From Magallana gigas (Eukaryota), in contig NC_088853.1 of the NCBI RefSeq assembly GCF_963853765.1, positions 25,916,001 to 25,980,000 on the forward strand: a stretch of DNA of 64,000 bases, written 5' to 3'. How positions within the stretch are numbered: the stretch's first letter is position 1; each line of letters opens with the position of its first letter. Shown piece by piece: positions 14,589 through 15,295 of this stretch. The notes under the pieces were generated by a model. That model worked only from the letters and a program-made list of their open reading frames with translations. It had not been told where the DNA came from and did no database searches. Position numbers and translations under genes: made by a program.

Positions 14589-14673
14589 TTTTTCAAGCTG
14601 ACTGTATCACACTGTGTACTGTATGGGGTAATGTGAGTTTCAATGGATCCATAAACCTGGTAAATCCTTTTAC

Positions 14674-15295
14674 TGTGCTGTTAGAAGAACAGCTAAGTTA
14701 ACCATGGAAGGCAATGTTACAATCTTCTAAGTTTTATTGATAAAGCGTGTGCCAACATATGGTAAAAGGCTGTAACAAAAAATAGAACACAAATAAAGAC
14801 ACCATTACAATACCATGTCATACAATACACACACAGTCACATGCATTTATATTCTAGTAAGCTATCTTTAAGAGTTAATAGAGAGAAATTACATATTCAG
14901 AAAACTTAATAAATTCAAGATCTATTAATAAACCAGAAACTTTTAAAACAAATTGTTGATACTAAATATACAGAAATAGCACATTTAAAAATGGCCGCCA
15001 AAGTATCGATTAAAATATTAAACCGTGTTCGATTAAAAAGAGTTGATTTACACATAAAAAGCAATCTAAGAAACAGAGATATTCATAACTATGAGTTTAT
15101 ATAATCAGTCTTACATTTTGAGCAGGCTAGGATGGCATTCAAATCAAGGAAACGAAGGTGGAGCACCTCGTGTATTTCGACTAGGTAAAACGTTGGATCA
15201 ACGAAAACATTGAAGAGTTCCAAAATACAAAAACATTAGATAACTCGTACAACAAAGACAAAAAAGGGGCATAACTCTTGTTTGATTACAGCACA
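14674..15295 (-). repeat. 5' LTR of BEL element 1, containing an intron-like segment (donor 15114, acceptor 14770) and AATAAA (14733-14738)
   Basis: Sense strand reads caaaat|GTAAGA ... ttttttgttacAG|CCTTTTAC. The LTR is followed by the non-tRNA PBS-position sequence GTAAAAGGATTT (14673-14662). Confidence 0.95.

Follow-up and report, generated by a model that had tools for sequence, protein, structure and literature searches.

The window analysed, a stretch of 64,000 nt of oyster DNA (Magallana gigas, contig NC_088853.1, positions 25,916,001 to 25,980,000), contains a BEL/Pao LTR retrotransposon on the minus strand. Gapped comparison of the two repeats placed the 5′ LTR at 15295-14674 (622 nt) and the 3′ LTR at 8472-7850 (623 nt), with three differences between them, at 15254, at 15234 (an indel in a T-run) and at 14870. 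The LTRs have the terminal inverted repeat TGTGCTG/CAGCACA, and the element is flanked by the 5-bp target-site duplication CCCAG at 15296-15300 and 7849-7845. A polypurine tract ending ...ccagacggggag (8484-8473) lies just before the 3′ LTR, and the same ...GGGGAG|TGT layout was seen in the sister families described below. The gag ORF (14588-12990, 532 aa) and the pol ORF (13072-8564, 1502 aa) are intact. A profile search gave a weak DUF1759 hit in gag, and in pol the Pao peptidase A17 (PF05380, 2.4e-44), DUF5641 (PF18701, 4.7e-24) and an integrase core (rve, 2.8e-05, below its curated cut-off), while an RT domain was not listed by Pfam at the threshold used. The genome holds five full-length copies and about ten further LTRs of this family.

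The internal region starts GTAAAAGGATTT (14673-14662), directly after the last LTR base in ...CAGCACA at 14674, and is followed by a leader (14661-14589) that extends to the gag ATG. The LTR contains a GT...AG segment of 345 nt (15114-14770), a putative intron with 26% GC. Its donor is AAAT|GTAAGA, with the first G at 15114 (GTAAGA at 15114-15109), and its pyrimidine tract plus AG lie at 14790-14770 in ttttttgttacAG|CCTTTTAC, with the G of AG at 14770. Removal of this segment joins AAAT (15118-15115), the end of U3 plus putative exon 1 (15295-15115, 38% GC), to the first 8 nt of putative exon 2, CCTTTTAC (14769-14762). The product, AAATCCTTTTAC, is the exact 12-nt reverse complement of 14673-14662, and its 3′ end abuts the LTR end; the unspliced LTR holds only the 8-nt part. 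The rest of exon 2 (14761-14674; R/U5, with the border between them inferred) carries AATAAA at 14738-14733. Every coordinate in the first-pass annotation, which had proposed that the primer-binding site (PBS) is complementary to a spliced junction within the LTR, was correct on the minus strand. Two refinements were made. The LTR is 622 nt rather than 560 nt; it runs on past the 1-nt T-run indel to TGTGCTG. A second GT at 14982 (TAAAT|GTGCTA) would give a 13-nt match, but it is a poor donor, and by analogy with the other families the donor at 15114 is preferred.

To examine whether this match was more than chance, the N-terminal half of gag was used to find related BEL families in the same genome, and full elements were retrieved for five of them (L055-L059; 23–37% gag identity). 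All five had the same plan. The LTR ends (A/T)CA or ATA, the internal region starts GTAA, and 74–124 nt before the LTR end there is a pyrimidine-rich tract, then AG, then 7–8 nt complementary to the start of the internal region, always ending TTAC and followed by C, with AATAAA 20–40 nt later. In each LTR exactly one upstream GT extended the complementarity, by 5–6 nt, and it was always a consensus donor (CACTAA|GTAAGT, AACGAT|GTATGT, TACAAT|GTATGT, ATGGA|GTAAGT and AAATT|GTAAGT). With the window family, which gains 4 nt, six families match over 12–14 nt. Further loci gave matches of 13 nt (L052), 11 nt (L053) and 15 nt (a variant of L040), and two elements on contigs from other assemblies (L061 and L062; 49% and 38% gag identity) matched over 11 nt each. 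In L061, an ENA contig from another organism, the 5′ LTR copy has lost 17 nt that include the acceptor and the exon-2 primer part, which the 3′ LTR keeps, and the leader between the 5′ LTR and gag (5175-10000) is about 4.8 kb and filled with several tandem-repeat arrays. Loci without the signature were 5′-truncated or mutated copies of two of these families, so every family seen with an intact 5′ LTR has the layout. Overall, eight families in this genome with an intact 5′ LTR, plus the two elements from other assemblies, share a consensus donor (GTAAGT, GTATGT or GTAAGA), an AT-rich intron-like segment of 96–485 nt, a pyrimidine tract followed by AG, 6–8 nt of exon 2 ending in TTAC, AATAAA, and an LTR end followed by GTAA. 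A degenerate copy of yet another BEL family with this plan lies within the window at 29400-29766 on the plus strand (...CGCGAT|GTAAGT, then tgtttgttgtAG|CTTTTTACC, AATAAA, and ...GTACA|GTAAAAAAGATCAC). Its match is broken by a 1-nt difference in the A-run and one exon-1 mismatch, and as no ORF of 200 aa or more lies between 20000 and 40000, it is an old, decayed copy.

The paired bases differed between families yet remained complementary. In an LTR-by-PBS cross matrix, each LTR matched its own PBS over 13–14 nt and the PBS of other families over 0–8 nt, except for two families sharing GTAAAAAA, which reached 10–11 nt. At most 1 of 500 LTR shuffles reached the observed junction–PBS match in each of six families. 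Counted from the 3′ end of the putative primer over nine families, positions 1–4 were invariant (TTAC/GTAA), positions 5–11 were Watson–Crick paired in 9 of 9, and pairing ended at positions 12–15; two to four different Watson–Crick pair types were found at each of positions 5–12. The covarying positions lie on both sides of the GT...AG segment. The functional molecule must therefore have that segment removed, although splicing and priming themselves are inferred. Within the window family, the PBS, donor and acceptor are kept in all 5 full-length copies, which are identical at all the relevant sites and so gave no information on covariation.

Composition and folding were consistent with this interpretation. 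The segments are 24–27% GC, against 28–48% in the flanks, with 11–15 pyrimidines among the 18 nt before AG, though no YTRAY branch-point match was found by a simple scan. Minimum-energy folds of the spliced leaders paired the junction with the PBS in 6 of 6 families, whereas controls with intron sequence in place of exon 1 did not in 5 of 6. The 30 nt of exon 1 upstream of the paired part also paired better with the 30 nt after their own PBS than with other families' leaders (−14.65 against −9.46 kcal/mol, with the diagonal sum ranking 4th of 720 permutations). This suggests a larger leader structure, as in Tf1, and an exon 1 of at least about 30 nt. In family L059, exon 1 holds CCAUGUUUC..CCUUG, which pairs with CAAGGAAACAUGG downstream of the PBS. 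That stretch includes the gag start codon, so the same helix could also gate gag translation. In L056 and L057 a shared CCATTTTGAAG word with a YY1-like core lies in the GC-richer part 20–70 nt before the donor, with similar T-rich words in the other families; it could be a promoter or initiator element, or part of the leader helix.

Direct evidence for splicing was not obtained. Over 14200-15400, two polyA RNA runs contributed only 6 and 50 raw reads, and no junctions were reported from these or from contigs of two RNA runs; the contigs crossed both the donor and the acceptor unspliced. Depth dipped over the intron, and in one read direction was zero across all eight intron bins, with about 2 reads over U3/exon 1 and about 1 over exon 2. 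These are handfuls of reads, and many LTR reads come from other copies or run on into unrelated flanks. The depth is too low to exclude splicing but gives no positive support beyond the dip. Intronless LTR copies were also sought. The junction patterns of four families, allowing up to 3 mismatches, had no match in the genome, whereas a control pattern spanning the LTR end and PBS found all 5 full-length copies. The junction was likewise absent from JGI metagenome contigs. An exact-protein look-up of gag for transcript contigs returned no record, and a Logan contig encoding a 30%-identical gag, with only 110 nt of leader, was not informative.

Taken together, we consider it more likely than not, though not certain, that this young BEL/Pao element does not use a tRNA primer and instead starts reverse transcription with a spliced piece of its own RNA. 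In this model, transcription starts in the GC-richer first ~180 nt of the LTR; a start downstream of the donor would preclude splicing of the 5′ copy. Removal of the 5′ intron brings together the last 4 nt of exon 1 and the first 8 nt of exon 2, and the resulting 12 nt fold back onto the PBS and close the ~90-nt R-U5 domain. By analogy with Tf1/Tf2 (PMC5341516), it is inferred that RT/RNase H cuts after the invariant ...UUAC (after C 14762), before the invariant C, and that the new 3′ OH primes minus-strand strong-stop DNA. An RNase H cut of an RNA–RNA duplex is known for Tf1 but remains untested for BEL/Pao. Strong-stop DNA would cover only exon 2 from nt 9 to the LTR end, so that after the first jump to the 3′ R, synthesis would continue through the first 8 nt of exon 2, the intron, exon 1 and U3 of the 3′ copy. 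The intron would thus be inherited only from RNAs whose 3′ copy is unspliced, a requirement that the first-pass annotation did not discuss and that needs the same intron to be spliced at one end and retained at the other end of the templating RNA. Splicing of the 3′ copy would place an exon junction about 270 nt after the pol stop codon and should, by inference, trigger nonsense-mediated decay. The absence of intronless LTRs fits either this filter or a need for intron sequences in the next round. If exon 1 is long, plus-strand strong-stop synthesis could run past the 12–14 paired nt of the primer. We also considered that transcription might start 3–7 nt before the donor, making the primer the true 5′ end as in Tf1. 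In 5 of 9 families the complement does start at an A preceded by a pyrimidine, but the cognate-specific pairing of the 30 nt further upstream makes this less likely, without excluding it.

Of the alternatives, the one that survives best, although unlikely, is that the junction–PBS helix is real and needs splicing but is not the primer. It would then be a long-range leader structure that marks or regulates spliced RNA, for example in packaging or dimerisation, control of gag translation, or silencing of the 5′ poly(A) signal, with minus-strand synthesis primed by something not yet identified. Covariation shows pairing rather than priming, the pairing extends beyond the PBS into the leader and, in L059, over the gag AUG, and no primer 3′ end has been observed. 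However, the 3′ end of the complement abuts the LTR end in every family, exactly where a minus-strand primer must end. No alternative tRNA-type PBS follows the LTR, with no TGG within the first 20 nt and AT-rich leaders, and the invariant TTAC|C border, together with the CA|GTAA border, fits a defined cleavage and extension site.

Plain Tf1-type self-priming without splicing, from a start at or near the AG|CCTTTTAC site, would appear improbable. The unspliced DNA does hold a 7–8 nt complement 59–124 nt before the LTR end, a plausible R start with AATAAA following at a suitable distance, and L059 has TATAAA about 26 nt upstream of the site. In every family, however, the match continues for 3–7 nt more into the sequence just before one consensus donor 96–485 nt upstream, and these bases covary with PBS positions 9–14, which an unspliced primer cannot explain. 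The contiguous match never crosses the AG, and in unspliced folds the 8 nt did not pair with the PBS in 5 of 6 families.

A host tRNA, tRNA fragment or other host RNA as primer, with the junction match as a by-product, is very unlikely. Belpaoviridae are described as primed by tRNA-Arg or tRNA-Gly (PMC8742986), and AAATCC resembles part of a T-loop. Nevertheless, the PBS differs between families at positions 5–14 and always tracks that family's own LTR junction, and no family has a TGG/CCA end. The window holds no tRNA gene. A T-arm-context pattern, TTCNAATCCTTTTAC, used in place of a host tRNA set, occurred 15 times against 16 for the reversed control, and the tandem-array hit among them is not a tRNA. 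A tandem array at G000:C9:37741754-37759216, with a period of about 2.5 kb and a unit that holds TTCCAATCCTTTTAC, is AT-rich and is not a tRNA by ARAGORN. Chance complementarity in AT-rich sequence, for which the longer match at the second GT shows that some extensions do arise by chance, is excluded by the shuffles, the cross-family matrix and the repetition of the layout in more than ten elements.

The ICTV profile of Belpaoviridae (BEL/Pao, Semotivirus) describes LTRs with TG...CA ends, a 5-bp target-site duplication, gag and pol with Pao peptidase A17, integrase and DUF5641, and a polypurine tract, as found here, but also an 18-nt PBS complementary to host tRNA-Arg or tRNA-Gly and tRNA-primed replication (PMC8742986). 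The families here have GTAA-type sites with no tRNA match and a putative intron in the LTR. As the PBS feature describes the known members rather than defining the family, membership rests on the protein evidence, which also places the element outside the Ty3/gypsy Tf1/sushi lineage. Tf1/Tf2 of fission yeast (Levin 1995; Lin & Levin 1997, as cited in PMC5341516) likewise lack a tRNA PBS, and their PBS directly after the 5′ LTR pairs with the element's own LTR-derived leader, in a helix that closes the R-U5 domain within a larger structure. The presence of the primer depends on start-site choice in Tf2, and would depend on splicing here. In Tf1 the primer is a contiguous stretch at the start of the mRNA, whereas here the complement, of 11–15 nt, is split 3–7 nt + 6–8 nt across a GT...AG segment of 96–485 nt. 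Self-priming has also been predicted, from contiguous PBS-to-LTR complementarity, in the Tcn1 (Ty3/gypsy) and TAR/Houba/Osr-1 (Ty1/copia) lineages of plants and fungi (PMC6317226). These show that self-priming is not confined to one superfamily, though no splicing is involved and none is a BEL/Pao element. In the literature searched, we found no report of a primer formed by splicing, of an intron in a BEL LTR, or of self-priming in BEL/Pao, and the two main BEL/Pao surveys (PMC3118150, PMC554778) do not mention a PBS at all.

The known primers of LTR elements are host tRNAs, whole or as a fragment, and, in Tf1-like elements, the 5′ end of the element's own RNA. A primer that comes into being only when an LTR intron is spliced out would be a third solution. 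It would tie retrotransposition to nuclear RNA processing, and so to tissue- or stage-specific splicing, intron retention and nonsense-mediated decay, would explain why an intron is kept inside an LTR at all, and would correct the statement that Belpaoviridae are tRNA-primed. It is perhaps slightly more likely than not that a whole lineage of BEL/Pao retrotransposons, in bivalves and probably other marine animals, has handed the licence for reverse transcription to the host spliceosome. This would be the first primer of reverse transcription built by RNA splicing, and the first self-priming in Belpaoviridae. The CA|GTAA at the LTR/internal border (14673-14670 for GTAA in the window element) resembles a weak 5′ splice site and sits 40–90 nt after the LTR poly(A) signal only in the 5′ LTR context. 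Speculatively, the GUAA that opens the PBS may double as a U1 site that defines the 96-nt exon 2 and silences the 5′ poly(A) signal. In practice, annotation pipelines that look for a tRNA PBS will mis-score these abundant mollusc families, and the CA|GTAA plus junction-complement signature gives a simple way to recognise them.

Elsewhere in the window, a tandem array with a 166-nt unit (about 10 copies, 90% matches, with higher-order periods of 333 and 499) lies at 17606-19492, 2.3 kb beyond the 5′ LTR of the element, and a second short 172-nt repeat lies at 23354-23760. A pair of direct repeats of about 720 nt at 89.8% identity, at 41679-42394 and 53477-54189, lies 11.8 kb apart with no ORF above 173 aa between them, and may be an old LTR element or a segmental repeat.
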